Positions 1 to 64,000 of a stretch of DNA of 64,000 nt are shown here, one piece after another. This stretch comes from Lenisia limosa (taxonomy: Eukaryota > Protista > Breviatea), in the NCBI GenBank assembly GCA_001655205.1, contig LPNZ01008239.1, forward strand, positions 1 to 64,000. The letters are read 5' to 3'. Each line of letters starts with the position of its first letter. The first letter of the stretch is position 1. A program made the translations under genes and the position numbers. The notes under the pieces were generated by a model. That model had not been told where the DNA came from, did not search any database, and worked only from the letters and a program-made list of their open reading frames with translations.

Positions 1-790
1 AGGCCAGTCGCTTCTGCAGCACCGTATCCCATCTCCCAGCGTACGTATGGGTGTAAATATAAACTCTAAGTGTGATGATGTATACGAAGCGAATCATTCT
101 GAACTCCTCCTCACCTGAGAATATCTGTTGACAATGGCTGCACCACGTCTTTGGACTAAACCCGGTAAAAGAAAGTATCCTCCCCTCCAAAAAACAACAC
201 CCCCCCCCCTCCAAGTCCAACTAACGCTAACCTGTGTTATCGGAGTGGCAACCTTCTTTTCGGCCTAAATGATCAGCATTCATTTAATGACGGGGTTTAT
301 ATTCTGTAGTACTCTGAAGGATTTTCAGAAATAAACAAAGGAATTTGGGTCAACCAGTGTATTAGTTTCTATAGTAGTCACCAACAGCACTAGACCACCA
401 AATGAGCAGAAAGTGAATACACCCAGACCTGAGCGGCCGGCAACTGGGTCTCAGAGGGACTCAATTTGTCGCGGTCAATGGCTTGTTCCAACCACGCAGT
501 GGCCTTCTGTGTCTATTGTATAAGGTCTAACTGTACAATGTAACTAAATCCTGCACAAACATCACGTTTATTAATTCCTAGGAGATCCTTAACAACACCT
601 CATAACTCCGTTTCTTCATAAGAGATCCTTAACAACACCTCATACGGTTGAACCAAATATCAAGTATTACGACCCAAAATCTTCATTCATTCACATATCC
701 CCCCAACAAAGAAAGCGCTCTGGATCAAGGCGATGGAAATGACAAGCATTAAGGCCATGCCGATTACGGTCGGAGCGTCGCTCCATTGCT
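1..790 (-). CDS. 5' part of an unknown multi-exon gene with a hydrophobic N-terminal anchor or signal; continues beyond the left edge
   Basis: Exons join in phase: QWSDAPTVIGMALMLVISIALIQSAFFVGGY|TQKATAWLEQAIDRDKLSPSETQLPAAQ|AEKKVATPITQ|SKDVVQPLSTDILR|WDTVLQKRLA. The hydrophobic stretch suggests a type II membrane or secreted protein. True start uncertain (758 or further upstream). Confidence 0.5.
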
Positions 791-1378
791 GCGAAATAAA
801 ACAAAAAAACAGGAGGGGTTGACAATAACGAAACCACAAGAGCACAGCACAGTGCAGCACAGTGTAAAGCGGAATAAGTAATGCCGCCTCGGGAGGGGAG
901 GGGCAAGGGCAATATCACAGTAAAAAATCATCCCAGTAGTAATCTTTTGCCATAAAAAACAAACCATCCTCAGTAGTTTCATCCAAGTTAAACTTTTTGA
1001 TATTCATTGCTAGAGAAAGCGGCAGATAATGAGGGAATGTTCGGCGGTAGGTGAAGAGATTTACCCCTTACCAACCTTATCAACCGATATTACTGTCAGA
1101 AACACGACAAATAGTGAGAACGCGCTTCCAAGGCTTCCAGACTAGAGATAAGAACAAATTGAATCGGTTTTTTAACACTCAGCAACCTACCACAGCTTCT
1201 TGGGGGCCTTCCTTATTCTTATCAAAGACATATCCATTCTTAAGCCAAAGGGGAGGGTCCTTTCCATTGCCCTGTGAAAAAAATGGAGAAGACTTCGTCA
1301 TCGTGTCACCTCAGCAATCCATTTTACGCTTTTCTTTTATCTCGCTTCATTCTCTACAACATTAACCCATCATATATG

Positions 1379-4300
1379 TCATGGGTTCAAGCTGGATTTT
1401 ATTTTTCTTCGCCCTATCTGACTGGAACGGAACGCCTGGTTGATTTTTTTCCCCGCGACCGTGATCTGAATGGTCCCGTTCCCCCATTTTTGATCAGAAA
1501 AATAGTAATATAAAAATATATAAATATATATATCCAATAATAATACATCTCTGATACATCTATAGATCATCCACTATACCACTATATAGTATCTATATCT
1601 CACATATATCTATATACTATATAACCTGTCCTGCCCACCCCGCACTCTGAACTCTGTGGCTTGACCTTTAGAAATGTTAGAGCCTTGGTAGCGCCTTGCC
1701 CTTTTTGACGAGCTATCTGCCAGTAAGTCTAAGGGTTTCAATTTAAAGAACATATTCTACATTCTTCCGATAATAATTGGGATAACGAAATTAAATTGTT
1801 TCTGTGTATAGCCTCTGGCTCGTTTTGTTTTTGATTCATATTGCTTCCCTTATAAATTTAGTAATGGCTGGAGAATTCTCGGTTCAAGATGTCATATTCC
1901 TCAGTCTCTTACAAGCGTGGGGGGGGGGGGGNNNNNNNNNNNNNNNNNNNNNNNNNNNNNNNNNNNNNNNNNNNNNNNNNNNNNNNNNNNNNNNNNNNNN
2001 NNNNNNNNNNNNNNNNNNNNNNNNNNNNNNNNNNNNNNNNNNATCACGAACTAAATAATCTGAAACTCCAAACAACAAAATAACAAAAAAAACAAGCAAT
2101 AACAAAACACGAGCAACCAACGCTAAAACTAGACAAAAACCAGAGGACAAAAACACAAAAACAGAAACAAGCCCTTGAAGAGTCCCACTACCGCTCGATC
2201 ACCCTCTCGTACCTGTAAGGCGTTAAAAAAAATTAGGGGGGAAAATACGGCTTATTAACGGTCACAACCCAATCATAACGATAGAGCCGTCCCAAGCATA
2301 CGACCCCCGAGGGGATCAAAGCTGGTAATTTGACTTTGTTGAACACTGTTCAAGATACATTTTTCTGATTTGACCATGCCTCAGGCTCCACCACAATGAC
2401 CGTCTTACTCTTCCCATCGGTGTCGCTTCGGTAGACGTCCTTGAGTTATCTGGTCAGGCTCTATACCTTTGGTTGTCTTCTCCTAAGTCTGTTCTTCCAA
2501 CTATTTTCTCACGGCTTTGCTTTAAAGAGATTGTGTGCAGTTTTTTTTATTTTATACTTCCGACATTTTTGATGTTCAAGGACTGGATGCTCTGGTTATC
2601 GCCTCTATGTCTGCAAGGGTGTGTGGGGCATCTCTGCTGTGTATTGGTCTCAGAATCACTAACTTGTATTCACGCAGAACGTTTTTAGGTGGAGGGTATT
2701 TGTGTTGACCACAAACTATAACTTGATGTAGGGCCGGCACGTGAATTTATCTCAACCCGGCCTCTACAACCCCGAGCGATGCATCGACACTGCTTCTTCC
2801 TGTGGGGGGTTGCCTTGTATTATTGGATTGGGGGCTATTTTATGCCTTTTTTCACTTTGCAGATATGACGCCAGAAATGCCTATGAGCACGGTCTGTCCA
2901 AGTGAAATAAGCATGTGTTTGACCTGACGTTCTGTTTTGTTGATTGTTTTATGTTTGTTATATCCAAGGCGGGTTATATCATTATGTGAGGGAGGCGGTT
3001 ACATCATTATGTACAGACTAGTATCATATCCGTCGTTCAAACTTATTAGGTCGCACAACAATTCCTTTTGTATATTTATTTTCACAGATGGTTCCACCAA
3101 CAACAGTTGTTCCGGATACGCCTCACGCCACTCCAGTTACGCCAGCGCCAACCACTGCGCGTACTGTTGGAGGATTATGGCCGGGAGGAGCGTAACAAGT
3201 TGTTTTTGAGTTGTTTGATCATAAATTCACTTCATATCGCTCCACAGTTTTGATCGCGTACTCAAAAATAAACAAGTTTATATCAAATAACTGACGCATT
3301 AGGAGGTCAGTACTCTTCGAGCCACCCTTGGTCAGCTGACACCCTTCGACATTTCCGACGACAACATGTCTCTGACCACATTAACGTTTGTGCTCCTTTC
3401 TTGCCACGTGAGAGGAAACAACTGCATTCAACCCTGAGATTTTCACTCTTCACAATAATATATGATAATATACTATATACTATATCTATATGTACTATAT
3501 TACTAAAAAAAATCATCAACATTCTATAGAATGACGAAGCTGTTGATGACGTTGCTGTTGACCTAGGTATCAGTCCTCTTAAATTCCGCTCAATCTCAGC
3601 TGCCTTAAAAACAATAGTGAGAGGGGAGACCTCACATCTGATATAGTGTCTTCACCTGGGGGGGGGGGGGATCAGNNNNNNNNNNNNNNNNNNNNNNNNN
3701 NNNNNNNNNNNNNNNNNNNNNNNNNNNNNNNNNNNNNNTTCCCATTCTTTCACAATTCACAATTCAAGAACATAATCGAAGAGGAGAATCGAGTTGATAG
3801 GCCTTTTCTCAGGTAACTTGGGGTGTTCAGGCCTGTTAGCAATTGTCATTTGCAACTTCTTTGATACTGAGCAATGTCCAGATGGTACTTATGCAAAACT
3901 GTTGACGTTTCGCTCTTCCCTTCGTGGGAACTTGCTGAGGTGAATGGGAGCTTTTGTTGATCATGTGAAAACTGAAACAATTTGAACACTCGTGACTCTC
4001 ATTGCGTTTTATTTATTTTTCCGTTTTACACAGTAGTCGTTTTTCCGACTGAACCTCTGGGTGATATCGAAGGCCTTTTCTCTAGCTGTTGAAGACAAGG
4101 ATGATGATACTGTCTGCTTGGCTGGAAATGGGGGGCTATTTTAAGCAAATATTTTGTTCACTTGTCATCATCATCCATACGGTCTCACCCCCCCCCCCAG
4201 AAAGCCGATCTAGCAGATCAATTCATGGTGCTGGCACGTGCTATTCTCGTGTGGCCAGCAGGCATCATACCAGATCACCAGAGTGGGCCCTAATGGGCTC

Positions 4301-7300
4301 TTGCCATTTACTCTGTTCCCACTCATCATTTACTTACATGTATATCCTTAGCTTCTCTATCTTTAAGCTCATGTGTTGACTTTTTTTTTCTTTTTCTTCA
4401 ACTTTTGTTGTGTCTTAATTGGTCGCAGTCCCCTGCTCACAGCCACTACTCAAAGCAGCTTTGAATGAAATGGATGCATTTCTTGGTCCTTACCTGGACA
4501 GCCAAACAAACCTCCCAAAGTCCGTCGTGTTGCGTGTGTTCCAAGTGGGGAAATCTATCACGGTAAATACTATCATTATATTATATATTATATATCGAAA
4601 TATATACGATAGAATTTGATTATATTACACTAGTCTTTATTTATAACAATACTGAATAGTTCCTTCATTGCTCACCAATGTTCAACAAACCCCCCGCCCA
4701 GAATCTCAGTCGATGCTATTATGATGCTGAAGATGGAACATTTGTTGACGACAGTCAGCATATTGATGACGTCATAGCGGACTGTGCAGCAGCCCATGGC
4801 GTTGACCAAACAGTGCTGTCGGCAATGTATGCGGGGCTATTTGTATATTATAAAGTGTTTTTATTGTCATACCAGAAAAAGCTCTCCTATTTACGGTAAA
4901 CTTTCATTTTTTAATCACTAGATGCATGCAAACAGCCTGTGACATGTTTCTCAAAGAAGGTAACGCCAACTGCCTCAGTAACCTCATTGAAGCGGCCACT
5001 GCCATCGGTGAGACAAGGCCTTTCGTCATCCCCAGTTTCATTATTTTTATCCCGAAACAAATACTACTTCTTTTTGTGACAATTGCCTGTTTAAATACTT
5101 GACTCCGCAGGTGAAGGGTCCGGAAAACACCCCATGTGGGCTGAGGAAGTTATCAAAAACTCAACCCGCGACACCCTCACCATTCTTGAAGAACAAACTA
5201 TGATGGCTCTGACTGATTACCTTGATAAGCCTGTTGGAGGGGAAGAGGACTCACAAACCTAGCCAAAACCCTTGTTCTCACTCTCCGTCCTCGGGAGAAC
5301 CATCTTTTTTCTGATAATTTAGGATACCTTTTCTGGAGTTATTTCAGCCCATAAAATCCTCAGTCATTTCGGGGATGTTGAGTCCTCAGCTCGTCAAATG
5401 AAGAAATTATGCTTGAATGCAGGAACACATTTATTCGAAAGTATCAGACCCAACGTTGGAGGCGAGGGAATGATCAAGCTGTTTTTGAGTACACTGTTAA
5501 CCATCATCCAGCTTCCACCATTTGAAATGGAGGAGCTTCTTGAGCTGTCAGAGAGCCTGTCTACTTACCTCAGAGATGAAACTTTTCTTGTGGGAAGTAG
5601 TAGAAATACGGCAAAACCAATATCTTATACAAGCGTTGTTGTTTGCTTTTCCAAGAATCTCAGCTTTCTCTATGCGATGGTATCTTGTTTGTCTTACTTT
5701 GAAATTCGAGCTTTAATATCATGCTATAACTTTTTTTCATAGGTCGTGGCTTTCACTCATTGCCCTAGGCCTTGTGCCAACAGTTCAATACCACGCACTT
5801 CACCCAGGGTGCCAGCACGGTCGTGGGCGAGTTGGCCAGATTGACTGACTCTGTTGTGCGGGACTCCTTTGAGTTGGCGGCTGCTTTTAATGATTGACTT
5901 GATTACTTCAGAGTATTTCTCATTTCTACAGCTTTATCATCTTCTTAGTTCATAGCACTCTTTATATTCTCGCAACACTATTTTTATACACACCCATAAT
6001 CTGCAGACTTGCTCATGCATAACAGGACACGGGTTCGCAACCTGACACCTGAGGTTATGCGGGGCCTTGGTGAAATCGACCAGCTGTCCTCAGATTTCAA
6101 CATCGCTCTCACTAAGTGTGCACAAAACTGCTTTCATTCGACTCCACTCAGTTGTCAACAGGAAACACTTCTAACAACATAGGGCGCGACATTTGGAAAC
6201 CTCAAGTCTTCCACCCAGTTCGGAGGGTCCTCCTAGTTATCAAGGTTTGCTCAAGATCACCTTTCAGAAAGAAATGAGAATTTGGGATGCTTTGATGCTC
6301 TGTGTGACTCTTCTAGAAGCCTTGGATGACAAAACAAAACTCAGCAATATACCCGTTATCAACTTTGAACCCTACTTTCTGCCGCTTGTTAATAGGTATA
6401 GACAGGATAGGCTTTTTCTACACAGGCATTATCCCATTAACGTATTAGACTGTCTGGTACCTCTTTTTCATTTCTCTTTTCTACATCTTTTGTTTTGCCT
6501 CGCATATCTGTTTACCTTCAGATGGGTTAGTGACACTGAGAAAAAATGGATGAATTGGACGGACAACGCTCTAAGTGACGAAACTTGGGACCCCAACGCA
6601 CAACCGGGTAAGTATCATTACTCTTCTATCGTAAACTTGTTTTTTTTTACCTCTTCGCATCATTCTTTAGGCCCTGCACCATCTTGTCACACTGTTTTGA
6701 CAATGATCAACCAAGTGGGTGGATAGGGTTTAATTTTATCATACTGCTGAGGGTTTCTTTGATTCTTTAGATCTTGCCGCTTTTGTCGAACATCACAGCG
6801 CAAAGTGCTGCTCAGGGAGTTCTCTTTCCCATTGCCAATGCGTGAGATGGTTGTTCTTGACTACTTATAATCACTGATGATACGACAAAATGAAATTCAT
6901 ATTATTTCATATGATATGCCCTAATATCATGTGATGGTATTATTTGTGTTAAAAACAAGCATAGATATGGTAATTCTTTGCTTTTGACATTTTAGAGTGG
7001 ATCGCCTCCTTGTCCACTACTCAAACAAAATTACACTTGACTTGGGCAACAGGGTTGGTGTCGTATTGAAACCTGTGAAAATTTTCTTTCAACTCTACTC
7101 TGATACTGATTAACTATTTTAGTTGGCTATGTCATAGTGAATTCATTCTTCTTCTCATCCCATTCAGACGAGCATGCTACCTTCAAGAATGTATCAGAAA
7201 GTCGACCGTCCCAAGTCCACTCTTGGCATCTTCAAGGTTAGCTCTTACTCAAAATTCTTTCCCCACTGACAGCCCTGACAGCCTGTAGGACTCGAAGCCA

Positions 7301-9190
7301 CCACTACCAGCTTTGCCGCAATCTGCCATCGATCAGCTCGAAAAATTCACTACACAATCGGTGAGCCGTTGTATTCAATTCTTCTGCTACCCCCCCCCCC
7401 CNNNNNNNNNNNNNNNNNNNNNNNNNNNNNNNNNNNNNNNNNNNNNNNNNNNNNNNNNNNNNNNNNNNNNNNNNNNNNNNNNNNNNNNCGCCTATCCTCG
7501 CTCTGCTGGATGCTCCAGCAAATTCGAACAATCAAGGTTTGGAAGAGGCTAGCAGTTGCACAGAGGATATCGCGAAGTCCTGATATTGTACTATTACCTG
7601 GAACTCCTTTCCCAGCTAATTGGATATCCCCAAAATGAAACATTGTCCTCCTCTACTCAACCGAATCAGACCGTTATCGGTGCTTCTGAGCTTAGACACT
7701 CAGGCTTTTCGGGACTCTCTATCCGCTCTCTATCTCACTTTCCAGGAGCAGCTACTAGGATCGTGTGGATGGGCAGCAGATCTCGGAGAGTCGAATAGAA
7801 ACCTCTTTAAAACAGGTCGCTCAGCTATCACCCAGGTTCTGGGGATGTGTACATTTTACCCTACCTCCCAACCATCCCAGCCTCTCATCACGTGCAGGTT
7901 GTCAATGGGCTCTTTGAATTTCTTGCTCGGTTCATTGTCTTCTTCAAACACAGGTTAGGATACTCGAATTATGCCTTTCGTATGTATGATTCGAATTCCA
8001 TTTCAATTTATAGTACGATGTATTATATTATATCTATGATATTCTAATATATCATATGATAATACTGAGCTTTAGATTTGGATAACGATTCTAGTTCCAA
8101 GGTTACAATTCTCTGTTTTGTTTGTTTTAGCTTTCAAGATAAAGCCCATTTGATTGATTACGTGGAGGGTGGAATCTGCATTGTTAAAAAGGTCTCATCT
8201 GTCACTCTGGTGTATTATCCAAATCAATCATTTCTAAGGAGGGGGTACTATTCTTTCTTCTATAATTTGTCTTATCCCTCCCACAGAAAGTCACTGGTGG
8301 AGGAGATGTACGTCCCATCTATCAAGTACAACAACTGGGCCTCGCTGCAGTCAGGCTTCTATGCTGAGCTTTCTGAGATATGTAGCATAACAAATGTGGA
8401 ATGTGGTAGAAATACCTCTGAGACCTACGTAGAAATGTGGTAGGTCAGAGAACCTAATCAATGATAGGCCTTCTCTAGTATCACCTGACAACTCAGCGCC
8501 AAGTCGGTTCTCAGCGGGCTTGTCGAGGGTCTGGACTTTGTACTGTTCTCAGGAGGGAGGTACGTTGCAAAGCAGTTGACCTATCCTCCCATCACCCTTG
8601 TCACTTTACAGACGGCGTGTGTTCTATCCTGATGATTTCAACCAGCTGATCAATGAAGTTAATGTTTGTGGATACCTTTATTTCGTCTTCAGATACTATT
8701 TCATTGAGTTGACTATTCAGCAAATCCGAGGCTTCTTTGTCGATGAGCAGTCTGACGGCACCATCAATGGATTACATCCTTCAAGTACGTAAATGTCAAG
8801 GAATTCCATTGATATCTTATGTAGTTAATAATATTATCATAGATTTCTGAAATAAGAACGTTTTGACTGTTTTATACATAAATATCAAATGAGAATGTCT
8901 AAGTATTTCTAACTCGAAGTTGTGAACCAGTACCTCATGCCAATATCTTCAATGACTGCCGTTTTACGTGAGCCAAGTGCTGAGCTTATTCGTCGTTTTG
9001 ACACTGCGGTGAGTCTCAGTTATTGTTTTTTTTTATTTCTAACACAAAACAGCCTTACAAATCCTCTGTGTCTCAATTCACAAAATCTAATATCTACCGG
9101 GTGCTTCTCCACCGCGATGACCCTCGTGCGATTAAGTTCAAAAAGAAGGAGAAGAAGAACCATGATATGCTGGAGGCATCAAGAGACTAG
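1379..9190 (+). CDS. MUN-domain (Munc13-homology) protein of the PATROL1/DUF810 type; many exons, 5' end uncertain
   Basis: Spliced C-terminus RRVFYPDDFNQLINE|QIRGFFVDEQSDGTINGLHPS|VVNQYLMPISSMTAVLREPSAELIRRFDTA|PYKSSVSQFTKSNIYRVLLHRDDPRAIKFKKK...ASRD* (TAG 9188-9190). This resembles the DUF810/PATROL1 end (F..D..L.EFF..GGDGLP..VV; ELI; RVLCHR.D..AS.FLKK). Helical exons run back to about 3090. Whether exons at 1379-2900 belong to this gene is inferred. Confidence 0.75.
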
Positions 9191-9504: not shown

Positions 9505-12500
9505 CTAATATGAAGCCCTCAATAGTTCTTTATCAACCGCATCAACAAACCTTTGGCCATAACAATCTGGGTCGAAGCACTTTTGCCAGCACTGTCGTTT
9601 TGAGAGATCGGCCACCCAGTAAACGCCATTGGACCTAAATATCAGATGCCAGCTGAGGGAAAAGCTTCCTCTACAAACATCAAGAATTCCCTCCAACTTG
9701 TGATTCCGTCCGACATTCAAACAATATCTGCTTGCAGTGATATTGACCCACAGCAAGTCTCCTGCTCCATCTGGCACTTTAATTGACCTGAAAAATAAAT
9801 GACTCTCATACAGGAACCAGCAGCGTCACTCACACAGACACTCAGCGATTATAAAGAAAATGGATGAATTGCTGTCAAATGAGCATGTCCGTAATAGATA
9901 GAGCAGCAAGGGGGGGTGTCAAATGAGCATGTCCGTAATAGATAGAGTAGCAACGGGGGCTGTCAAATGAGCATGTCCGTAATAGATAGAGTAGCAAGGG
10001 GGGCTGTCAACAGTATATCTAAGAAAATAACTACTGTTATTCAATGAAGAAAATATTTGACCAGAGAGAAGCCTTGGTCAAGCTCACGAGACAACAGCGT
10101 TGGGGTCAATGATTTTGGCATGGTGCTGGACTGCCGCCTTGGCCTCTTCAACGGTAGCGTTTTGCGATGACGTCTACAAAGTTCAGGGGTTATAATGACA
10201 TCAATAAACCAAGCTAAAAACAACTCTAATTAACCAAGAACAATACCATTATTTAATCATACCTCCCCAGGTCGGAATTGCGAGTGTGGGGCTAGAGCTG
10301 GGGGTTTTCCCACAAGAGGAGTCTCGGGCTGAGTCCTAAATGAGGTTATTCTCACTAAGGGGGGTCGTCATATATGATATACATTAGTATTACTTATTTC
10401 ATGTACTATACTATATGCATATACTATATCATATACTACGCCATACTGGGTGTGTGGTATGTCAGGGCATAATTTCAAATGTACATGTATCTATAATATA
10501 TAATTTATATGTAGTAGCTATATGATATGTCCATACCCCATGGGGGTATGGCAAAAAGCCAAATGTATATGATATGATATTATATATGATATTTATAAAA
10601 CCGTATTTTTGCCTGGAAAAGAGAATTGAGCCCATCAATCTTTCGGAAAAATTGGCTTTAACATTGGAAGATGTTCAAAATCCATTGAAGATCCCTTGAC
10701 TATTGTTGATCATCAGATCCGTGAGATTAATAGCCTATTTAACTCACCTGTTCTAATGCATTTTTATACCATCATCAATCAGGAATTGTAAAAATGTATT
10801 TAGTAATATAATTTGTATTATATGAATGGGGGTATGTCATATTTACCTTGTATGTATTATATGACATAAAAACAGGGCTTCCCTACGGTCTGAAAAATAC
10901 CGTTAAAACATCGATATTTATCGAAAATTTATCGAGAAATTCAGTCTTTTTGGGACTGTAGGGAAGCCCTACATATAAATATTTCAATGGGGGCATGTCT
11001 AAGGCCAAAAATGTATACAATATACAATATGACGACGCCCCTAAGGTATGAGGATTGCTACGCAGTGTGNNNNNNNNNNNNNNNNNNNNNNNNNNNNNNN
11101 NNNNNNNNNNNNNNNNNNNNNNNNNNNNNNNNNNNNNNGTTTTTGGGGGGACTTGAAGCCGAACCGTCCGACTGGAATTCGGATGTCTGAATGAAGGTGC
11201 GCCGAAATCGATCTGTTTTGTCAGCAACAAGACAATAAGTAAATGCACAAAGTTGCATAACAACTTAATACTACCCCCACAACACCACCAGATCACACTC
11301 TCTGCAATTATAAGGATTCAAATCATATATCATATCATAGTATATCATATCATATTGTACAGTATCAAAATAGTATGCATATAGTATACTATATCATAGG
11401 TCCTTTATTGTGCCTTTGGTCCAATAATATAGATATTTTTTGGAATAGCTATTGAAGTGAACGCCTACTTTGGAGGGCTCTGTGGTAAAGGCACAAATCG
11501 AGGGGACTCCCATGACGACTGGTTTACTTTGCGAGTGACAATTCTGTACGTGATGTTAGAGAACAATATTATTGTATCATCTCAAAACATTCAAAACTAA
11601 GCTCAATTTGCCACAATGAAAAAGCAAACATAATAAACAAACGTTTTATCTGGAGTCTTGAAAGAAGCAGAGGATGGAAGGATTTTACATCGGGTAGCAT
11701 GGGCAAACTTCTTTGAAAGAGAAACGGGAACCCCCTAAAAAGTGAGCACTCATCACGACCAGAAAACGGGTACAACCCAGGAAGCCTACTCTAACAATCA
11801 GAGGATTCAGGCGGTTGGGGCAATACGACGCCATGCTCCAGGCCAGGTCAGCAAAATTCACTTCATCCGACTCCCCATCCGAAGTGGTGAACCTGAACTC
11901 TTAGATAAGAAAACACCTCCTAAGTGAATTGTTCATCAGTCCTCCAAATGTTTTGGCCCCTGTATACTTCGATATAGTAAATTGATATGACATAATGTGC
12001 ATAATTTCTTAACTTACGTGGCTTGAACTGGGCTGATGGGAAGCGGAAGTTCAGAAATAAAACGACTTGAGGGTCGCCCAGTTTGACCTAAAACAACTCT
12101 CTTGGTGCAATCCTGTGAAGGTAAGAGCAAGATGCTGCCATTATAGTAACAATAGATGAAGTCCCCAAACCAGCCAAATTGTAGCTGATTTGGTAAATAA
12201 TACACCAATTTTCCTTCCTTAATAATTTTCCAATTTTGTAATAACAAAGATAACACTCACCTGGTCAGAGAATGGCGTGACTGTTGGCGCTGCTTCCTGG
12301 AATTTTAGATGCTATGAGCTGAATAGTGAAATCCCCGTCATACGTCATCACCAATGTGGGTATCTTGGGGAGTGGTTTTCGCCTAAGGTGTAAAAATCAA
12401 TGTTGAAAAAGAGTGTGTGTTGACCCCCCCCCCCCTTCGGATGGTTTTGANNNNNNNNNNNNNNNCCAGCCCACCTTGTCAGGGTTGATGAGGGAGATAT

Positions 12501-14618: not shown

Positions 14619-14825
14619 TCTACGTAATCATCCATAGCATGTTCCCCCTTAGAATGATAAATGATAGAAGAGGGCGAAGTGTATCATGCTGTGGCTGTGG
14701 ACATAGAGAACTTCTCTGACTCCTTCTGATTCCTGGAATTTCCTTGCGGGGTCAAGTCAGGGTGAGGTGGGGCTCAGGGTATAAATATAAACGTTTATTC
14801 TATCAGATGTCAGTTTTTGGTGTGT

Positions 14826-18241: not shown

Positions 18242-18271
18242 AATTCAACTGTAGACAAGATGTGGCTGGTA

Positions 18272-47821: not shown

Positions 47822-47921
47822 ATCTACTGTACTATCATATGCATTATATTTATTTTTTTTGTTTTGAAACCCTCCCACCTCTAAAGAAAGAAATATCCTC
47901 ACAATAGTCCCCCATTTAAGA

Positions 47922-49898: not shown

Positions 49899-51166
49899 AT
49901 GGAAGGGGACGCAACACCAGTCAAGCTTATTCTTCTTGGAGACTCTGCTGTTGGAAAGTCAAAGTTAGTTGATGAATTGACTATTTTCTCCTGTTTTGTT
50001 CGTTTTAGTCAAGGCGGTTTTAGTGTAATTATTGAATAACTTTTAAAGATTGGTGGAGAGGTACCTTATGGATGACTTCCATCCTCAACAACTCTCAACC
50101 TACGCTCTAACCCTGTTCCAACATGAGGCGGTTCTTTCAGATGGTACCAAAGTTCCTTTAAGTAGGAGGGAGGAGAGGAGGATGGGGATTGTGCTTGAAG
50201 GGATTCACTTTATCATTAATATGGAATTTGACCCATTAGATATTTGGGATACAGCTGGACAGGAAGTGTTCTCCAATATGCACCCGGCGTACTATGACAA
50301 AGCACATGTGTGTATTTTGGTAGGTAAACTCTTGTGAAAGCCATAGCAGTCCCAGCCTTCCTTTTTTTTCGTTCTTGTAATTATTAACAATTTTAGGCTT
50401 TTGATGTCACTCGTAAGAGCACATATAAGAACCTGACAAAATGGCACAAGGAGCTAACTGACCATCGACCTGATATCCCAATCATTGTTGTCGCTAACAA
50501 AGTTGATAGTGGGTTTTTTGCCAAATTTTTCTGCGTAATGGAGTTGATGGAAGGCAAAGTGATGCCTTTCCGAAACTTGATGTAGACCTTCCTACTGTTT
50601 TTTGTCTTGATATATCAATAATCATATGACCGATAAGAAGATCACACGAGGGTTTATCCTGAGTGTATCAGAGTATCATTGAGACTTGTTGTTCTATTTC
50701 CTACGAGTGGATATGAGGTATCCCTTCACTGCGTGGAAAAATGATTAATACGCGTGAAAATGATCCAAAAAGTAATAATAACTTTAATAAAAATGAAAAA
50801 ATATTGATAACCAACTTACTTTCTTTGAGCCTTTGCTTTTGATTACTTCTGCTCTTTTATTTCAGTTTTCATGTTTGTAATACCTCTCAGCCGACTATTC
50901 TGTTACAAGCAAGTCTTACAATTTCGCCACCAAGAGGAATCTACCCTTCCATTTTGTCTCAGCTGCTGATGGGACCAATGTTGTTAAAGTGGGTGTTTGT
51001 TTTTATATTTAGGGTGTTTGTTGCTAAAGTGGTGTTATAATGGGTCTTTGCTGTTGTCGTTCACCTCCCTCAGGTTTTTACTGAGGCTGTTAAACTGGGT
51101 AAAAAGTTCCAAGAACACGCTCCAAAGAACTTTGTTGCTGACGTAATGGACTTATTGGTGGGATGA
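49899..51166 (+). CDS. RABL2: Rab-like protein 2 (RABL2), cilia-associated GTPase
   Basis: VKLILLGDSAVGKSK|LVERYLMDDFHPQQLSTYALTLF..|DIWDTAGQEVFSNMHPAYYDKAHVCILV|FDVTRKSTYKNL..W..EL..RPDIPIIVVANKVD..YNFATKRNLPFHFVSAADGTNVVK|VF..DVMDLLVG*. Confidence 0.96.
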
Positions 51167-51706
51167 AGTAGACTTCATTGGTCATGGAACATGGACTTTT
51201 CTGACCTTCTCAGGACACTATTGACGACGAACTTGCTGAATAACTGCCAAGGCAGCGGTTGGGGGGAGAGCTATAGTATTGAGTGTTGGTATTGGGTTTA
51301 CCGTTGTACCTCAATTTTGATATGTGCTCTAATGCATGGGGTTCCGATTACAGAGGTTACTCCTATTATGACCAACTTATCACCATAGATGATATGTAAT
51401 ATTACCATAGATGATATGAATAACTTCATATTTACCCTGTTTCATCTATGAACTGATCTCTATTTCGCTTACAGCACCTTTTATGCATACGCACCGCACC
51501 TTTTTCTGACTCCTTTAGGTAGGCACTAAGGGTATTCCCACTCCATAGAAAGGTGTAAGAGAGGGAAGGGAATAATGACTTTTTCGATCAAACTCATTAC
51601 TTTTCTCATTTTGCTACATTCACTCATGTATATAAATAATTACTGACAAAACACAACAAAAATATTAAAAGATAATGTACAACAATAGAGAGGAGAGTAA
51701 GATAAC

Positions 51707-54700
51707 TTATTTTGCTTTAAATTTCTTGGAAATTGACCTTGAGGAACCCTAAAATTGTTAGAAAGTAATTTCAGGATTCTCGTTGAATCAAATGTATTCA
51801 CCCTATCTGAAAATAGAAACTCACCTTATATTGGTAAATACCCATAATGGTATGAGCATATTCGTACAGCTCTGGTCGTAAACTATTGAGTTAGGAACAA
51901 CCTTCATCCATGCCAAAGGCTTCTTTTCTCACTCTTTTCCAAAGTACAGCCCCACCTGATAACGATGAATTGAGCCTGAGACTTGGCTGCATGCTTGGTC
52001 ATAAACTTTGCTACTCGGTTCACTGCCCGTGTGTCCTGAATATTAGTGTATAAGTCTTCATTTCAAGAGAAAAACTGATGTACATGTCAAAAACAATCCT
52101 CTCTAATGGTTGACTACTTCTCTCTCACCAAAGAAGCGTCAATTTCATCAAACAAATACAAAGGTGACGGGTAAGATGTTTGGAAGGAGAGAGAAAGCGA
52201 AAGGGCGGAGAGTGCTTTTTCACCTCCCGACAGCTGGTTGAACAGCTTCCATGTTCTTTCCGGCTTGATCTAGATGGAATTACTGCAGTGAAGTCTTTAT
52301 TGAAACTAATCTTCATATAGATCCGGCGGTCTTTGTACAATAAAGAGAGACAGAACAGAAAAAGACAGAAGTTAGAAAGAGTTGTTACCTTCTTGCTTTA
52401 TTACCCTCTCACATGGAATGAGATTCCTTCACGAAAAGCAACATAAGGGTCAGGTGACATGTGCAAAAAGGAGTCGCCAATTGTGGTGACTAAAGCGTAA
52501 AACCGAGCGTGCTCAGACTCCACAGAATAATGATCTTCCTACGCTCTTTAAATATCTTCGAAAGATTGGCATTTACCGTCTTAAGAGACTGTTGGAGATG
52601 GAAGTACCTTGATTGACCAAGTTGAGAAAACTCATCTTTTAATCCATCAACCATTACGACCAAAGTAAAAAAACCTTGCTTTTTATATTTGATTTGAATA
52701 TTTACGTTCTGCTCTTCTAGCTGTTGATCAAGCTTTTGAGCTATCATGACCTGATGGTAATAAGTAAGGGAGTAAGGAAATGGAACAACGCTGATAATTT
52801 TGACATCATTATTACCTTTTCAAAGTCAATATCTTCTTTCATTTTCTCTACCACAGCTTCTTCGTTTTCAATCCAATATCTAGTTATCTCCAAATAGGAA
52901 CCTTTTTTCGTTAAGTTGCTCAATAACCTGTTCGTTTTCAAACAAATAGTCCTCTACTTGGTTACATTCATTGAAGAACAGAATTTCATTTTCCTAAAGT
53001 AGTTAGCAACAAAAGCACTTAATGTAAATCAAAACGTGGTTGGACTGACCTTTAAGCAGTCAATTTTTTGAAGTAATTCTGACACTGACGAATTTGAGGA
53101 AGCTTCCTCATCATCAAGTTGAACTTTTGGAATCAGAGGAGTTATCTGCGTAATGGACTTGTTTATCGAATGAAGGTTTATAAAAAACAGTTTGAACATG
53201 TTTTTGAATTGGAGCTATCTTTCCTTTTTTGCTTGATATCGAAAGCTCTTGATTGGATTTCTAAACGCAGTAAGGTCCATAAATTCATCACAAAGCATGA
53301 CTGTATTGAAACCAACTTCATGGAGTAAACTCCTCTGTTTAGTTTTCAAATCATTTAGGTCTTCTAATGATTTGTCCATAACATCCCTGTTTGATTGCTG
53401 CTTGAGAATCAATTCTTTCAATGACTTTTCGCTAGTTAAGAGAAACAAAAACCATTTAGTTTTCAAATCCAAGAGCTTCTTTTGTTTTTCGTTAACTTGT
53501 TCCTTTTTACTTTTAATTTTCAAGAGCTAAACATGAAAAACCCCTCTTTTCACAAACCTTTTTCGTATTCTTTTTCTTGGCCTGTTTAAAGTTAATCAAT
53601 TGAGACTTCTTTTCTTGGAGAGTTGTACAAATTAAAACGACTTATAAACTGTGATGATTGAAGACTTGCTTGTAATTTCAACAAGATATCTTTGTTTGGA
53701 GGACCATATGTTTCAAGAATGTGGTTGAAGCCTCCACTCATAGCCTTTGGTTAACATTAAATCTTACCTTTTGATCTTTAATATTTGCCTTCAAATCACT
53801 CAGTTTTTGCTCCAAAGTACTGTTTTTCTTTTTCATATTTTCAGCTGAACTTTTAAACACAAACAGTCCAATAATTGTGTCTTCCATCACATTCTCTCTC
53901 ACCTTCTTCAGATTTCTGAACGACAAGCTTTTCTTGACGTCTTATGGACTCAAATGACCCTTTGATGGCCTACACTGTGAAAATATATATTCTATGTTGG
54001 TTCTGGAAGTTGGTTCAGTAAATACAATTTGTATTTCATCCTGAAGTCACCCTTAGTATTAAGATTTTTACAGCAAGTAATATCCAGAATTAATTCATTC
54101 ATAGCACATAAAATGGGGCTTATAATCAGAGATATGAAGAATATGTTGGAAAAATAATAGCTTTCAAGTAGGAAAATAGGCGACTATTATTTTTGTCATA
54201 ATTGGAACCAGTTTGCACCCCCTTGAAAATAGGGTAATTCATTCCTGTTTAAATAAACTATTGACAACAAATATACGTATACTGCGGTGCACTTTGTGTG
54301 CAACCTGATTCAAATTTGGAATTGTAACAAGAAGGCTATTTCAGGCACTTTAACTTCAATCTTAAAATGAATTGCAGAGTCCTAATAAAACGGTTTATAC
54401 TCTGTTATTCTGTAACTAAAAGTATTGCAACTACAAAAATAAGTACAGACTATGTTGTTGTATGAAATGTATATAAGGCACAATAAATGATGAGTCTCTT
54501 ATCACAAACAATAACTGTTCACACCCAATTGTCGGGATGAATCGGATTTTTTTTCTCTTATCAAACCGAAAATAGTTTGAACAATCCTAAATGCTACGGT
54601 GACACATATCCCATTTACTTTCTTTGAAGAGTTGATCTTTCTCGTGATTTCTTGTTTCTTCTTTGACCATCTCTGAGAGATACACTCATTTTTAGCCAAA

Positions 54701-57700
54701 TTTTTCTTTAGGCCACTTTGTTTCCTAAAGGATAAGCTGGAAACAATTAATGATAAACATTTCAGATAATAATAATATTATGATATATTAGTAGATCAAA
54801 CTAGTATAATATACTTAAACTAGTATTCTGTTCAAATGAACATATCACTTATGACCATAATCAACTTGGGTAATAATACTATATGTAATAGTAATGATTA
54901 TCATAATAATTAAAATGATAATAACGTAAGTAAATATCCGTTTTGGCTCACTCTTGTATTATGTTTAGGTCATTTTTAAATCTTCCTATTTTGACTTTCA
55001 TTTCAACAAGATCGGTTGTTGAGAGTCGCAATCCATCTGTTATCCAAAACCTAGAGAAACTCAAGAAAGAAATGAAAACAGGAAAAAGTTAGACATATTA
55101 TCGTGATTTGTGATACCCTAATTCAGCAATGACTATGCTTGACACCAACCGTGAAGTTATCATATTCGGAGACTGTGATCCTATTTCACCATTTTGAAGA
55201 AACATCTGGATAGATGAGTAGTGCAAGAAACACACAAAACAAATAACACAACACTCACTTTGCCTGTCTGATCTACTATGTTGTAGGAAAGTAAGGATGA
55301 ATTTGGGATATAATCGTCTTTTTCGCAAAACTGCCATCTTCCAAGCAATTGGATAAATGCCTGAATTAATCATAAACGTGCTTGTATAAAAACCCTGATA
55401 CTCTCCAACACAAACAAACCGGTAGGATGTCCTTCGAACAAGTAATGCAATCAATAAGCGGTTTCATATCCGTGCTGCAACGCTTGTATTGCTTGCATTC
55501 GGATGTAATTAAACACGTCACTGGTGTCTTGATGCGTCTTTCTTCCACGATGGAAAGTACCACATTTGATGCTTCTCTTGATGCAACTAACACTGAAGGA
55601 GATAAATTGCTTTTGATAATTCCAATTCTTCACGTTTTCCTTAATCCTCACCAGTTGTTTCTAACTTTCCTTGTAAAACAGAATTGACAGCCAAACTGTA
55701 CTTTTTATCGACCAATGTAGCTATTGAGTGAGATAAAGTTTGATAATGGTTTATTAAGGGTTATATACAAGGTTATTATTACCTTGAGTTGACAGTATGC
55801 CAAAAACTTCAGAAGATTTCTGTTTTGCATCAGCAACAATAGTTTCAATTTCGGTCTCTGTCTACAGTTACTAAGTGAAATAACATTTCCAAAGATCAGT
55901 GAGTTGAGATCTGAAAGACACTTAACAATACTTTCCTCTCTAAACAATGTAAAAAGATACTCCGGAACACCATCTCACTCTCTTTCTTTCAGTAGCATTT
56001 CATCTTTTGTTAAGTTAATCTGGGCACCAATTACATTGTACCTAAACATGTCAAAAAGTCCCCGCATCAAAGAAGATAAACAATTCTAATAGTTCTCTCA
56101 CTGGGTTTGCGCTTCTGAAAAGTCCTCTTGATGGACCTCTTGTGCTTTTTTATGATCATTAATAGCTAAGTTTAGTACCTCAATTGATTTTTCTGCATCA
56201 TTTATCGAATAAATGTTTTAAAACAACTTCTTTGTGAATTTTGCTGATAATATCTTGATTTTGGACAAGTAATCTCTGCATTTTTGACAGTCTGAAACGT
56301 GACAAAAGGTTAACCTACTCTGTTTCGGTGATTAAAAGGCTTTCAGATCTAAATATTGAGAAATTTTAAGTAAATCCCACTTTGAAGCATCATTTCTTAA
56401 AGATAACCCAATTGAAGCAGCAACTGAACCGGTAAAAGAATTATTTTCAATAATGGATGCCTCAGCTTTCCCTATTTCACTTTCCTATGTTGAGGTTAAT
56501 GGTTAATAAATGGACTAAGATTTTAAACCTACAAAATCAAATGCAAATGACTGGTTTTTTTCGGCAGCTTTCTCAACTTCTATTATTGCGTTGGCAATCA
56601 TCTTTTGATTCTAGACAATAAGAGTTTTGTCTAAAACCTCAGCTTCATTGTCATTTTCAAATGTCATCTTTTCTGTCAAGGTTAGCATTTCATGATTAAA
56701 TCCTCTTAATTCTTTTTCAACGAGAGATGCTTCTTTCTGTAAAATTAAATATCAAATGGACACACCTTCAATTGAGCAATTTCAGTGGAATTTAATAAAC
56801 TGGTTTGATACTCCATTTGAATTAACTTGTCAGTCTTTTCTATTTGTTGAGAAATTGATTTTTCTTCATTTTCCTGTAATTTGAGTGTATTACTCAATTT
56901 TTCCAAATCTTCATTTAGTAAGCTTATATGATTGGTGAATTTGCCAGATTTATTTTCAAGAAGTTTAAGAATCTGATTAGTTTTAACCTTCAAACTGCAG
57001 TGAGCACCATTCTTGAAAGTAGGTAATGATCATGCTTTTCTTGATTGAGAATATCAGATCGTTGTTCATATCAAATTAGTAAAGATCATAAACTGAACAT
57101 GCTTCTCTATTACATCATCATAAATTGCTCTTTTCAGTTGACAATTCAAGTTAACCAAAAAAAAATACTTGATGTTCAATTTCTAAATCATCAACTTCTT
57201 GTTGTACCTCTAAAAGAGCTGTTTGATATGTGGTCATCTTCTCTCTTATTTGACCATTACCTGAAAGAGTGAGAGTGCTTTCTATGAGAAAATGGAATCA
57301 ATAATAAAAATGTGTAGAAATCACAGAGATGCAATAATAGAATGGTTCTTTTGTCACAATATTTGATTGTGTCTGTTGAACTAAAAGAAAGTGTTACACA
57401 TACCAATCACGTTTTCAACCCAATGGAGAAGATCCACGGGGCCTTTTGCAATGAGAAGAGTTGAGTGCTGTTGTATAATGCACCTTTCAGGGTATTCAAG
57501 ATTGAGGTTGAAGCGATACAGTAGTAATGAAAAGAGCTCTGCAGTTTTAGTACTTATCATTAGCACAAACGCAAATACAATATCAAATCAGCACAAAATA
57601 CATCGATTCATACTTACCTTGTTTTGTAATCTTTTTGCCAGGGTGAATACCTTGACTGAAAGGAATGATGACTCTAGAGAATAAATGGGGTTGATTTTGA

Positions 57701-58253
57701 GCTATCTTACTCTGATTGGTATTCTTCTTCAAAGCAATAGTAAGATGAAAATGTTTTTGTGACGTAACGAGTAATTTTCAATAGATTTGATCTGAAAAAA
57801 ATCACAACAAAAGATTTCAAACTTTTGCGGGCTGACGGTGTGAAAGTTGAGACATACAGCAGCAAATGACTTGTTTGACTTAACAGAATCTTCATTCAAA
57901 AGCGACTGGACATTGTTTCCTCTGATTGATGCGGCTGAAAAGCCAAAAACAAAGCAGACAGCTAAGTTCATAAAATAGGGGAAACATACAGTATTTGGCT
58001 ATTTGAAAAACCAAGCTCACCATCAAAAACAGTAGATTTACCTGTTCCATTTGGGCCAATAACAGCAGAAAAATTCTCATCAAATACGCCCTACAGAAAT
58101 AATAAAGTGGAATAAAACATATAGAAATTTAGGAAGAGGACAAAAAGTAAGACGACCACCAAGGAACCTTACAATTAATTCAGGGTCTCTGAAGCACTTA
58201 AATCCTTGGAGTTCAATGCTTTCCAGAACCAGTCTTTCTGTTTTGGCAACCAT
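51707..58253 (-). CDS. SMC ATPase, SMC4-like but highly divergent
   Basis: N-lobe LVLESIELQGFKCF..FDENFSAVIGPNGTGKSTVFDG..FVFGFSAASIRG (Walker A at 58034-58057); long coiled coils and a hinge-like region near 55100-55600; C-lobe EGISFHIKPERTWKLFNQLSGGEKALSALSL..PSPLYLFDEIDASLD..AQFIVISHR..MGIYQYK. A possible N-terminal extension reaches about 58743. Confidence 0.9.
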
Positions 58254-59035: not shown

Positions 59036-60240
59036 ATGGGTTTGCCCGCTTTAATCTCTTCTTGATAACTCCTTTAGAATCGTCATCTCAAAAGTAGGCT
59101 TGATAGATACTTTGGCATCATTATCAACCTGTATATATTTATATGACTAGACTTGAGGATTTATTCCAAAAGGACCTTGTCAAGTACTGCGATTTGGTAC
59201 AACGAGAAGAGAACCTGTTTGCTGTTGTTTCTAACTTAGGGGAGTGGCCATTCAAGAGATTGGAGTTCTTGGGTGGACTGGTGGTTATGCTGCTCAATGT
59301 TTGCTTGGGATTCAGAGGTTTATGCATAATTTTTCTTTGGGCTCATCAACGCAGCGTATACGAATAGAAGTGGTACGCTGTCAAAAATTATCAACTTGGT
59401 CAATAATGAAGCTTATCCTATCCACCTACAACTTGTTGGTGGGGTTCTGTATGGGGCCTTCAATTTTCCCTCCTTTTCATTCCAACAATAACCCATTCTA
59501 GACAGCTATTCAGTGTTTGACAACTTTGGTCCGAAACCACAGACCAAACCAAGGTGAGATGAGGATGACTGATAGTAACTACTTTTTCTATTTCTGATTT
59601 CAAAAAGTGACGCTAATTCCTCACCTCTAGAATTAGCAAAGTCCTCTGGGCTAATAGGGAATCTTGCTGCTCTCCTCGAATCTCAGCATGAAGAGACAGT
59701 TTGCTTGAGCTACTTCATTCCTCATACTTGTGAAAATTGTGACAAGTTAAATATTTTGATCGAATAATATTATCTTTTAGAGAAAATGGGGTGCCCATTG
59801 CCTTCTCTTTACAATTAGTGGGAACAGTTCCTGTCAAGCCACTGCGATGAAAGTGCCCAATTTGAAAGTATGTGTTTCAATTGTATTTTCAGTTTCAAGG
59901 CCTATGAATACCCTTTTCCAGATGTGATAAGATAAAATCACACTAAAAAAAATGACCTTTCCAAACAGTCCTTTGGTGTATAGTTGCACATATCTACTCG
60001 TCTCAGCCCTCGTGAATGGTCTTGAATTATTTTATTTAATTATTTATGGATGCTCAGAGGGAGGAACGAGGCTCATTACATTTTTGGTGATCCTTTGTCT
60101 TAGTTTATTCATTATAGTAGTTGTGTTAAAACTCCTCTTATTTCTTGTAGCGATTACTCACTGATGTGTCTCGAGATGACTGGTACTATTGGACTGTAAA
60201 CGACGCATATGAGATCCAAAAGCTCCTCCAATGGGCTTAA
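59036..60240 (+). CDS. Armadillo-like helical domain protein, ARMH2-like
   Basis: M|ESSSQK|LEDLFQKDLVK|GVAIQEIGVLGWTGGYAAQ|..LQL|TAIQCLTTLVRNHRPNQ|ELAKSSGLIGNLAALL..|RKWGAHCLLFTISGNSSCQ..|RLLTDVSRDDWYYWTVNDAYEIQKLLQWA*. Recalls the ARMH2 motifs A.Q.IG.L..TGG, KFW..Y.L, and L....W..W..N.A. Match is from memory. Confidence 0.65.
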
Positions 60241-60398
60241 TACCATTGGGCTTCATCTATGGATGGATTTGCCTTGAACAGGAAATAATGGTGTCCTGTT
60301 GTTTCTCTTGTATTGGGAACATTAAATAGATGAATCAATACAAGTAACTTACAACCAAACTACACACTATACAATACCTAAATTATTACATCATTAAC

Positions 60399-63300
60399 TC
60401 ATTGGGGGATAATTGGTCGAAGTTTCCAGGGCCTTGGCTGTTCAGAGCATTCTCGAACTTTGAGCAAGTGTCCAACACACACTCCAGTTCATCATAGAGC
60501 TTATCTCTCTCATCTGGATAATTAGCGGCCAATTACATGTGTTAAGGGTAAATACAAGTTCACTCACTAGCAATAGCGATGACTTCGGCTTCGAGAGCGG
60601 TCACCTGGAGGGTAAGTTTTTTTTACAATGCGATTTGGAATAATGATTCAATTAGATAACACAATGCATGTTGCTATTGATTATGTCCATTCACATCTGT
60701 CCCAAAAAAAAGACAGAATTACTTAATATCGATATTATAGTATAGGTGAAAACTGATTAAGAGATGTTTATGATACCTGAGCTCGAAGAGGCGCCACTTC
60801 TCCAGCAGTAGCCCGCAAAAGGGACGACTCTGCCTCTAATGAGTTCACGGCTCGTTGTGAGACTGCTGCAACTTCCTGAAAGAATAGTAGATAAAAGAAA
60901 TATCAGAAGCAGCTAACCTCAGTATTCATCACAGAATGCCTCAGTTCTCCAGCCTCATCCAGTAATAAACTTGCCTTCTTTCGACTATCGTCAATTTCCT
61001 GAGTCAACTCTTCGTTATCACCTTCCAATTTCGAAACCCTGTCAGTTAAGTGTTGAATCTGATTATCTTTGATATTGAGGGAAAACTGGTTAACGAAACA
61101 AGGAACTTCTGACTCCTCAGCTGAAGACGACAATTGGAGTTGTAACTGTGAAAGAGCGGCCTTCAGGCAATTGTTTTCTTCAGCCAGTTCCTTGAGAGTA
61201 TTTTTTGACTAATAAACACTAAATAAAAACGTTTTCGAGCTGATCTGTTACAGCTTGAACAATTTCTTCCATTTTTGAAATCTCCAATTCATGAGTCTCG
61301 TTTGTGGTTCTTAGAAGTGATGGTTTTGTTCAAATAGCTTACTGTTGGATTGATTTGGAAACTTGTTCAACTTCTCGCAGTCGTGACAACAAGCTTGCTT
61401 CCGCTTCTTGATGTTGAACAACCAATTCTGTCTAAAAAAAATATAAAAACAAACTAAACACCTCCTGAATACAATAAAACACGAGAGCCCAAAACCTTCT
61501 CATAACGGAACTCTTCAAAAAGTGCCTCCTTTTGTTCAATGGCTAAATTCTGATGAAGATAAACTCAGAAAAGAGGTAACTCTCACCTTTAAGTTGTTAA
61601 TAGTTTGTTTCATTTCCTCATTTTCTGTCTGAGCATTATCGAGCTTTGCTTGAATTGAGTTTAAGGCGTTCTAAAGAATTTTAAACATTGAGCACATGTT
61701 ATGTATAATTGACATAATCTAAATAAATGCTTCCTACCTGAAGCTTGAAGGATTTTTCGGTTTCCTCTGAAAGCAACGATTCTTGGTTTGTCATATTTTT
61801 TGAATATTGCTCATCTGAAGAAACAATCTTTGTTTTAAGGGTTGAAACATGCGTTTCATAGTGTTGTTCTGCGAGGTTAAAGGTGTGTCACATGTTCAAA
61901 TAAGCGAGGTGGAATCCCAACCAACTCATTTCTTCACTTCTAAGGGCTGCAGCTTGCTTTTCAGCCTCAAGCTCTTCGGTGTGAATAGTTCTGAGATCAT
62001 CGATAAGGGAGAGGGACTCGGACAGCTGTTGTTCATTGGACTTTCGCTGGTTGTGCTCTTCCTTGAGAGCCTGTGTTTTGGCTTTGAGACTCTCGCGAAT
62101 GATCTGAACATCTTGCTTGATGGTCTCAATCACCTAAAATGTGAGAAACTATTGACAGGGAGATTCCATAAAAGTCAAAAACAACGGTTTTTTCACCAGT
62201 TCATAGTTTAGGGGGTCCACTACAAAAAACCTACCTTTTCCTTCGTCTTGACATCCACAAGTAACAGGGCATTGCGCTCATTAACTACACTTAAGGAATT
62301 TTTCAGCTCATTTAGATCATGGCTTATTTTTTCTAAGGCCTCTGTCTTTGTGTCTGCCCTTTGCTTGTGGCGTATAATGTCTATCTCGAGCTGTGACTTC
62401 TGGAAAAGGTAAATACAACCCAATTCAAAATAGATGAAATAAGGTAAGTCACCCACTTCTTTTTGAAATATTGACTTTACTTCTTCGATTTTAATAGCGT
62501 TCAAAGTATCTTTTGAAGTCAAGGCATCCTAAATAATTGGATAAACAAGGCTAGCCAAAAAAGTAAAAATGTATTTTTGACTCCCCGGAAGGTGACCAAC
62601 CGAATACTCTATTCCAGCTGTTTTGAGTTCAGATTTAAGCTTTTGGATCTCTATTGAATGATCAAGAACAAGCTGCTTCTTTTGGGTTTCTTCATCATAG
62701 GTCAACTGCTTCTTATGAGACTCAAAATCATAAAAGAGGTCCTTTTTCTGCGTTTCTAAGTCAGCAATGATAATGTCTTTCTCCATGACAAGCATCGTCT
62801 TTTGAGACTCAAGTTCGTTTTGAAGCTCCTTCTTTTGTGCTTCAAAAGTGGAAATAATACTTGTTTTCTCTTTCGAGAATCAGGTTAATAGCAAAAACAA
62901 ACTCGAGTTTTAAGGTATTTATTTCCTCTTTAGATTTGGTAAGGTTGTTGTCGAGGGCGTTTTTGACTTCTTTAAGAAGGGAAGAAACCTAAAGAGTAAA
63001 TTAATAAGAATTACTCATAATCAGCGAAAAACATTAAGGGCATACTTGCTGGAATGACTCTTGCGCTTGAGCAACTTCTTCTGACAGCTGCGTTACCTGC
63101 TGCTGAGACTCCTCATATTCATCCTAAAAACAATAAACCAAAAAGATACGTAAACCAACAGATTTCTGCTCAAGTTTGTCTTGCTTGTCTTGAAGATTCA
63201 ATTGGCAGGATTCAATTTCGACAGCTAATTCTAAGAGACTATTAGCTATGCTCAAAAAAAGGTCTTGTATTGGATTTAAGGTTTAACCTGAATTGGTGGT

Positions 63301-64000
63301 TATAACACAAACCTCCGATTTCTAGAACTAAAGATTCATTTTTGGCTGTCAATTCATCGACTCGAGTGTTGGCATCTAAAGTAAAATCAAGGTGGTGGAA
63401 CTAACAAACCGTTGAAATCATCCAATAGCTTCTTGAATTTCATCTCTTGCTCGGATCTAAGTGCGGCAGCTTGGTTTAGATCACGTTGCAAACTAGAATG
63501 TTTAATGAACATTTTCCAATCAAAGATACCTTTCAACTTGTTGGGTTAAGAAGTTGTTGTTTTCTGTGAATTCGTTTTGGAGTTTTTCACAGATATCCTT
63601 CGCTTCTTCAGCAACGATCTTGCGATCAATCGATTGCTAGTTTAAAGTGAGTTTAAAATTATCCATTCTACACAACTGGCAGATTATGAGGGAAAAGAGC
63701 AGAACACAAAGCCATATTATAACCGATTCTGTTTGCCAAAACAAAAATTGAATCAATAACCTACCTTCATCTCAAGGTCATGAAGAGCGGATTCCAAACA
63801 GTCAACCTGGGTTCTAGATTGAGCAAGCTGCTTTTCAAGATAGTTGATGGCCGCTCGGGCCGCACCTAAATCACCATGCTTCTCTTCCAACTCTAAAAAC
63901 ATATAAACGTTTCAAAAATATTGCATGGAATTTTAAAAAAATTCAAGCCAAAAGTTTGTTACATTTTTGGTGTAATACTATATGATATGCATATGGTATA
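60399..64000 (-). CDS. Long coiled-coil protein, 3' part; 5' end lies beyond the window
   Basis: Heptad-rich E/K/L/Q exons, e.g. ARAAINYLEKQLAQSRTQVDCLESALHDLEMK, IETIKQDVQIIRESLKAKTQALKEEH and NQIQHLTDRVSKLEGDNEELTQEIDDSRKKA. Last exon DERDKLYDELECVGHLLKV..TNYPQ* (stop 60399-60401). No family identified. Confidence 0.75.

Follow-up and report, generated by a model that had tools for sequence, protein, structure and literature searches.

Do neighbouring genes of the protist Lenisia limosa obey a rule of orientation? The question is raised by positions 1-64000 of contig LPNZ01008239.1 (C8239, 69,710 bp, from a 49-Mb assembly of 11,727 contigs), a stretch of intron-rich nuclear DNA with a G+C content of about 40% (hereafter, the window). 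The initial annotation, spliced by hand, had described 15 genes in perfect strand alternation, and had proposed an obligate, genome-wide architecture of divergent and convergent pairs. Here, strands were assigned with a purpose-written gene finder and family searches, and junctions elsewhere in the assembly were sampled. The reading that we favour, with modest confidence, is that the window holds 15 real and unrelated protein-coding genes that alternate at all or nearly all of their 14 junctions, as an extreme local case of a genome-wide bias and not as the expression of a law. The bias, which we have sampled only, is likely strong and unusual.

Fifteen coding-strand blocks follow one another along the contig in the order minus, plus, minus and so on to a final minus, at a density of about one gene per 4.6 kb and with introns of about 40-300 nt. 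For ten of the 15, an exon-level family or structure match (some of them weak) lies on the assigned strand, and the ab initio scores of two more (genes 2 and 15) are very high. The strands at the seven divergent junctions come from such matches or from ab initio models. A marker built from splice-site matrices, with codon information left out, fires 70 times in the sense and seven times in the antisense direction over the 15 blocks, and agrees with the assignment in each block where it fires; it is not fully independent, as part of the training of its matrices used these very genes. No confirmed co-oriented pair and no run of same-strand genes was met on the 69.7-kb contig, and the large genes of the window have no exon-free stretch of more than 500 bp able to hold a tandem spacer. 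The alternation seen in the window is genuine and close to perfect, and it is almost certain that at least 12 of the 14 junctions alternate.

The gene finder uses dynamic programming to link open exon segments across GT...AG introns on each strand. Training was iterative and drew on about 183 kb of the genome (contig C8239, a few contigs chosen at random, and 30 loci surrounding Ras-family matches); it set the codon log-odds in two classes, the donor and acceptor matrices and the intron composition. Two simpler designs were rejected: codon self-training alone gave noisy strands and was replaced by the iterative splice matrices and two codon classes, and exon chaining without splice-site matrices merged half of the contig into one 'gene'. 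Permitting micro-introns of 18 nt or more left the window models unchanged. On a benchmark of 28 exons with strands fixed by Pfam, 23 were called correctly, one wrongly and four were missed. The reversed (not complemented) contig served as the null; there, the top chains of the individual 2-kb strand windows reached 15 at the 95th percentile and 17-21 at most, and chain scores below about 15 are taken as unproven. The finder fused a tandem PPDK and Ras pair on contig C5558 into one model, a warning that tandem pairs may be hidden. Introns have a median length of about 85 nt, a GTNNG donor in about 80% of cases, a T-rich sense strand, and a CTAAC- or TTAAC-like branch box 8-13 nt upstream of the YAG; splice signals alone give the strand of a gene about nine times in ten. 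Pfam and PDB comparisons of the spliced models were made with single exons. A Pfam search with long open reading frames as exons gave no significant matches in the window, and tRNA and Rfam searches of the window gave no matches.

Beyond the window, 19 of 25 pooled junctions switch strand (76%, exact confidence interval 55-91%), which is significantly above 50% (P=0.007) in a small and partly biased sample. Most were scored in the flanks of 17 small-GTPase genes on 17 other contigs (14 alternating and 3 tandem junctions), where the neighbour at each alternating junction had a chain score of at least 18 or a recognisable family, e.g., Tom22 (6.6e-6) or TPR (6e-4). Randomly fetched contigs gave 3 alternating and 2 tandem junctions, and family matches less than 1.7 kb apart gave 2 opposite-strand and 1 same-strand pair. 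Were each junction to switch with a probability of 0.76, 14 switches in 14 would have a probability of 0.02, and a few such windows would be expected in the genome. By this sample-based estimate, about three quarters of adjacent genes are on opposite strands, so that most genes would stand head-to-head on one side and tail-to-tail on the other. Whether the whole genome consists predominantly (at 75-85% or more of junctions) of alternating divergent and convergent pairs is finely balanced, and we lean slightly against it.

Tandem neighbours do occur. C7481 carries a coronin gene (WD40_4, 2e-18) that ends in a stop and, 580 bp further along the same strand, a Rab gene. In C5558, the sequence for the C-terminus of PPDK (PEP-utilizers_C, 2e-10; locus L039, 2708-3015, minus strand) immediately precedes a co-oriented classical Ras gene. 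Two Ras-family genes stand in tandem on C9482 (a paralogue pair), Helicase_C and Ras matches lie 1.3 kb apart on one strand of C5944, and C5000 carries a probable minus-minus pair. The spacers of the two clear non-paralogous cases measure 580-650 bp. On C8238, a piggyBac-like transposase remnant (L011, about 3371-4675, minus strand), recognised by eye, adjoins a co-oriented gene.

The divergent spacers of the window, measured between start codons and not between transcription start sites, span 174-1083 bp with a median of about 510 bp, so the 240-800 bp given initially was slightly too narrow a range. The earlier hand-splicing was accurate at the LTV1/LIS1 junction, where we recovered about 293 bp (ATG at 44258 and at about 44551) for a reported 291 bp; for the Sar-like and RABL2 genes, a spacing put at about 500 bp measures about 550 bp. 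Convergent spacers, from stop to stop, span 100-804 bp (median about 310 bp) and fall between 100 and 360 bp in most pairs. In three convergent pairs the stops are only 100-146 bp apart (18241-18340, 47822-47921 and 60241-60385), and from this proximity we infer 3' ends that abut or overlap, or that have a termination zone in common. The TATA-like word GTTATA / TATATAAC is present in 11 of the 17 divergent spacers of the window and loci, against 4.1 expected, a weak enrichment counted without positional analysis.

Several points weigh against the favoured reading. Within the window, genes 1, 7 and 14 are weakly supported, with chain scores near the null level, and if gene 14 is not a gene then the SMC and coiled-coil genes beside it form a minus-minus pair. 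The YgbA locus (gene 4), which the initial annotation had itself flagged as able to hide a tandem junction, stays ambiguous and could be two co-oriented plus-strand genes. Thus, of the claim of 15 genes in perfect alternation, the 15 alternating blocks stand and the perfection is open to question at these four loci; that the 14 junctions include no tandem pair at all is doubtful. The outside sample is small, as the width of its interval shows, and most of it surrounds conserved small-GTPase genes, a class that may favour bidirectional or housekeeping-type promoters. About a dozen flanks were unscorable, a 1.5-kb flank may reveal tandem neighbours a little less readily, and several neighbour genes rest on a finder trained on the same sequence. 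The strands of Pfam matches from ten family tables, used as a homology-only test across the genome, gave too few pairs. Matches of different families 2-6.5 kb apart are mostly co-oriented (9 of 11); these are ambiguous, as they may be next-but-one neighbours or parts of multidomain proteins, and they lend no support to alternation itself. A search for promoter motifs in the divergent spacers found nothing convincing, and both shared promoters and overlapping 3' ends are suggestions drawn from sequence.

The same counts can be read as a regional or gene-class effect, in which strong alternation is confined to dense blocks of conserved housekeeping genes, the genome average is 55-65%, and regions that are lineage-specific, duplicated or transposon-rich are mostly tandem. 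The window and the GTPase loci are indeed rich in conserved genes, the random contigs give just 3 alternating to 2 tandem junctions, one of the latter beside the piggyBac-like element, and one tandem case (C9482) is a paralogue pair. However, the numbers are too small to tell such an effect from a uniform 75%, and the non-conserved genes 1, 7, 14 and 15 still fit the pattern. We regard a regional effect as unlikely, though far from negligible.

A chance run, with orientation random (about 50% switches) and the window the luckiest of several hundred, is improbable. About 724 windows were screened and the striking ones reported, and close matches of different families outside the window share a strand as often as not. 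However, a run of 14 in 14 has a probability of 6e-5, so that only about 0.04 are expected over 724 windows, most of which are far shorter, and the independent outside sample also departs from an even division.

Less probable again is an artefact, in which wrong models, or scaffold pieces inverted at N gaps, create switches or hide tandem pairs. The window contains 15 gaps, and the merged PPDK-Ras model, the near-null scores of genes 1, 7 and 14 and the ambiguous YgbA locus all speak for some error of this kind. However, 12 of the 14 switches lie in uninterrupted sequence, and assembly gaps are thus not the source of the alternation. Only two gaps fall in switch regions (1932-2042 and 33645-33725, both in divergent spacers). 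The others are inside genes, in predicted introns wherever the exon model is strong enough to tell, and the pattern does not depend on continuity or frame across them. Errors of modelling are opposed by the strand-specific matches of ten blocks (some weak), by the agreement of the splice-signal marker wherever it fires, and by the lack of long exon-free stretches in the large genes. Most N runs abut G or C homopolymers of 12-15 nt (e.g., at 1932, 3676, 7402, 12638, 19350, 20551, 22120 and 22582), and the gaps probably reflect read failure after homopolymers or C-rich intron-end repeats, not joins of unrelated pieces.

Hardly tenable is the obligate rule first proposed, under which compulsory bidirectional promoters or termination by convergent collision would make all pairs divergent or convergent: the 69.7-kb contig has no certain tandem junction and three of its convergent pairs have closely spaced coding ends, but the family-supported tandem junctions on C7481 (coronin-Rab), C5558 (PPDK-Ras), C9482 (Ras-Ras) and C5944 (Helicase_C-Ras) contradict it, as do the probable minus-minus pair on C5000 and the transposon-associated tandem on C8238, and what survives of a genome-wide architectural rule is a tendency, seen in the excess of switches outside the window (19 of 25).

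The individual genes are supported as follows, with counts of the splice-signal marker given as plus/minus. Gene 1 (232-1301, minus), partial at the contig start, encodes an unknown protein with no Pfam match; its chain score of 14.9 is about the 95th percentile of the null, and the marker reads 0/2. Gene 2 (2385-9190, plus; chain 94.4, marker 7/0) is predicted, in a model left open at its 5' end, to encode a large protein of at least 907 amino acids in 29 exons, possibly Munc13/PATROL1-like to judge from a faint TPR_PATROL1 match (E-value 0.01) that is below its cut-off. A PrimPol-like primase-polymerase is predicted for gene 3 (9553-14618, minus; marker 0/6), with a Herpes_UL52 zinc-finger exon at 9553-9786 (6e-7) and a chain at 14066-14618 in which an N-terminal PrimPol-like motif is recognised by eye.

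Gene 4 (15579-18240, plus; chains 22-27) combines an N-terminal part with a YgbA_NO-like C-terminal domain (17554-17646, a weak match with an E-value of 0.016). The upstream plus-strand exons end at a strong donor (AAG|GTGAGA at 16907) that joins them to the YgbA exons, with no stop before it; the locus is therefore likely one gene, with the YgbA exons probably spliced to the upstream ones. Gene 5 (18341-27561, minus) encodes a RalGAP/RapGAP-domain protein of 1343 amino acids in 41 exons, complete from ATG to stop (chain 245.7; Rap_GAP at 19010-19108, 2.2e-5). Gene 6 (27990-30306, plus; chain 14-16, marker 2/0) is a STRAP/UNRIP-like WD40 protein, which we take to be STRAP purely from motifs seen by eye at its two termini (GDWIGTF and SEDGT-RLWQ...YGLW); nothing significant was obtained for it from Pfam or PDB. 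For gene 7 (30668-33467, minus), an unknown protein with no Pfam match, summed chains are 27.1 on the minus and 13.2 on the plus strand, and the marker reads 0/4. Gene 8 (34334-39256, plus; chain 140.9) encodes an SH3-domain coiled-coil protein (SH3_1 at 34334-34426, 8.4e-5).

The pre-40S ribosome factor LTV1 is encoded by gene 9 (39530-44258, minus; chain 95.6). The N-terminus MGRKKRFDKK...LVHK is read on the minus strand at 44258, and the exon at 40111-40206 matches an LTV1 homolog in PDB (6g18_t, 2.1e-4). The Pfam LTV model, applied exon by exon across the genome, found nothing, but the PDB search of that one exon did find LTV1. At 44210-44258 (minus), the first coding exon consists of the start codon alone and is followed at once by a 46-nt intron (GTACAG...GCTAAT...TGTAG), after which the next exon begins GRKKRFDKK. 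Its divergent partner, gene 10 (44551-47821, plus; chain 63.4), is LIS1/PAC1, with a LisH_PAC1 match (2.5e-6) and WD40 exons at 45770-45871 and 46335-46409. Two small GTPases come next: gene 11 (47922-49346, minus) is of the Sar/Arf family (Arf exon at 48879-48986, 3.6e-8 to 4e-6), and gene 12 (49899-51243, plus; chain 36.6), read by hand, is RABL2-like (Ras exons at 50236-50322 and 50397-50507).

Gene 13 (51900-58253, minus) encodes an SMC-family ATPase. The C-terminal head (SMC_N at 52105-52236, 2.5e-9) and the Walker A exon (58022-58090), which aligns with SMC1/SMC4 heads, are both on the minus strand and thus belong to one gene of about 6.3 kb; the N-terminal chain scores 19.3. Gene 14 (59143-60240, plus) is a candidate orphan, a 150-amino-acid helical-repeat protein in five exons running from ATG to stop. 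It has four clean introns of the GTNNG...YAG type with good acceptors, but its chain score is only 13.9 and the splice-signal marker is silent. Exon 1 has no relative among 1.8 billion proteins, and Pfam, representative-protein and Atlas searches were likewise without a match. Gene 15 (60386-64000, minus) encodes a giant coiled-coil protein of at least 1659 amino acids in 49-51 exons (chain 356-374, marker 2/17) and continues to the contig end at 69701.

Some observations concern the wider assembly and its source. Gene calls made from this assembly at the level of open reading frames are present in the ENA section of the protein collection. At 6589-15056 of C6231, kinase and mitochondrial-carrier matches fall in almost uninterrupted open frames of 129-282 amino acids, in contrast to the short exons seen elsewhere; the region may hold intron-poor genes or belong to a second organism in the assembly. 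Two short contigs (L170 and L171) of the JGI metagenome Ga0233424 share an exact 20-mer with a dispersed repeat of this genome, and the same or a related organism may be present in that sample; otherwise, words from dispersed repeats matched only bacteria, by chance, in public collections.

To our knowledge, almost every eukaryote studied has a near-random gene orientation, and those that depart from it do so through long same-strand arrays. These directional gene clusters include the polycistrons of kinetoplastids, the unidirectional arrays of dinoflagellates and chromerids, and the operons of nematodes and Oikopleura. They resemble the present case in that a non-random orientation rule holds genome-wide in protists or small animals. 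However, they mark the opposite extreme, with long same-strand runs and rare switches, whereas here same-strand neighbours are the minority. The head-to-head pairs of animals, plants, yeasts and sponges are alike in joining unrelated opposite-strand genes whose starts are within about 1 kb of each other (the distances here being ATG-based). Such pairs are common in compact genomes, but here they seemingly include most genes, and each pair is flanked by tail-to-tail junctions, which gives alternating runs. Opposite-strand junctions make up 46-53% of the total in Theileria species (PMC4761415) and 43% in Amphimedon, where about 45% of genes are head-to-head (PMC4773876). The fraction here (76% in the sample) is likely well above the 43-53% of these published compact genomes. 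The convergent junctions recall pairs with overlapping 3' ends (cis-natural antisense pairs). In Theileria, tail-to-tail spacers are also shorter than head-to-head ones, with 3'3' intergenic regions of median 126-203 bp (PMC4761415); in L. limosa, transcript overlap would follow from the spacing, and the frequency of such junctions appears higher.

The likely cause of the strands, spacings and exceptions that we observe is genome compaction. Head-to-head pairs would share one short promoter region, and tail-to-tail pairs one termination zone. A tandem junction would require a terminator and a promoter in one spacer, and 580-650 bp may be about the room taken by one of each. Tandem order would also leave the promoter of the second gene open to read-through from the first. 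Deletion bias together with selection against such interference could then enrich alternation without forbidding tandem pairs.

If the bias holds across the genome, no stronger strand alternation would have been described for a eukaryote, and genes would by default be packed with bidirectional promoter regions in common and with termination zones that are shared and overlap. For annotation, the strand of a neighbour would predict the strand of a gene. A free-living protist in which most neighbours face in opposite directions would offer a natural test case for the roles of bidirectional promoters, read-through and convergent termination in genome compaction.

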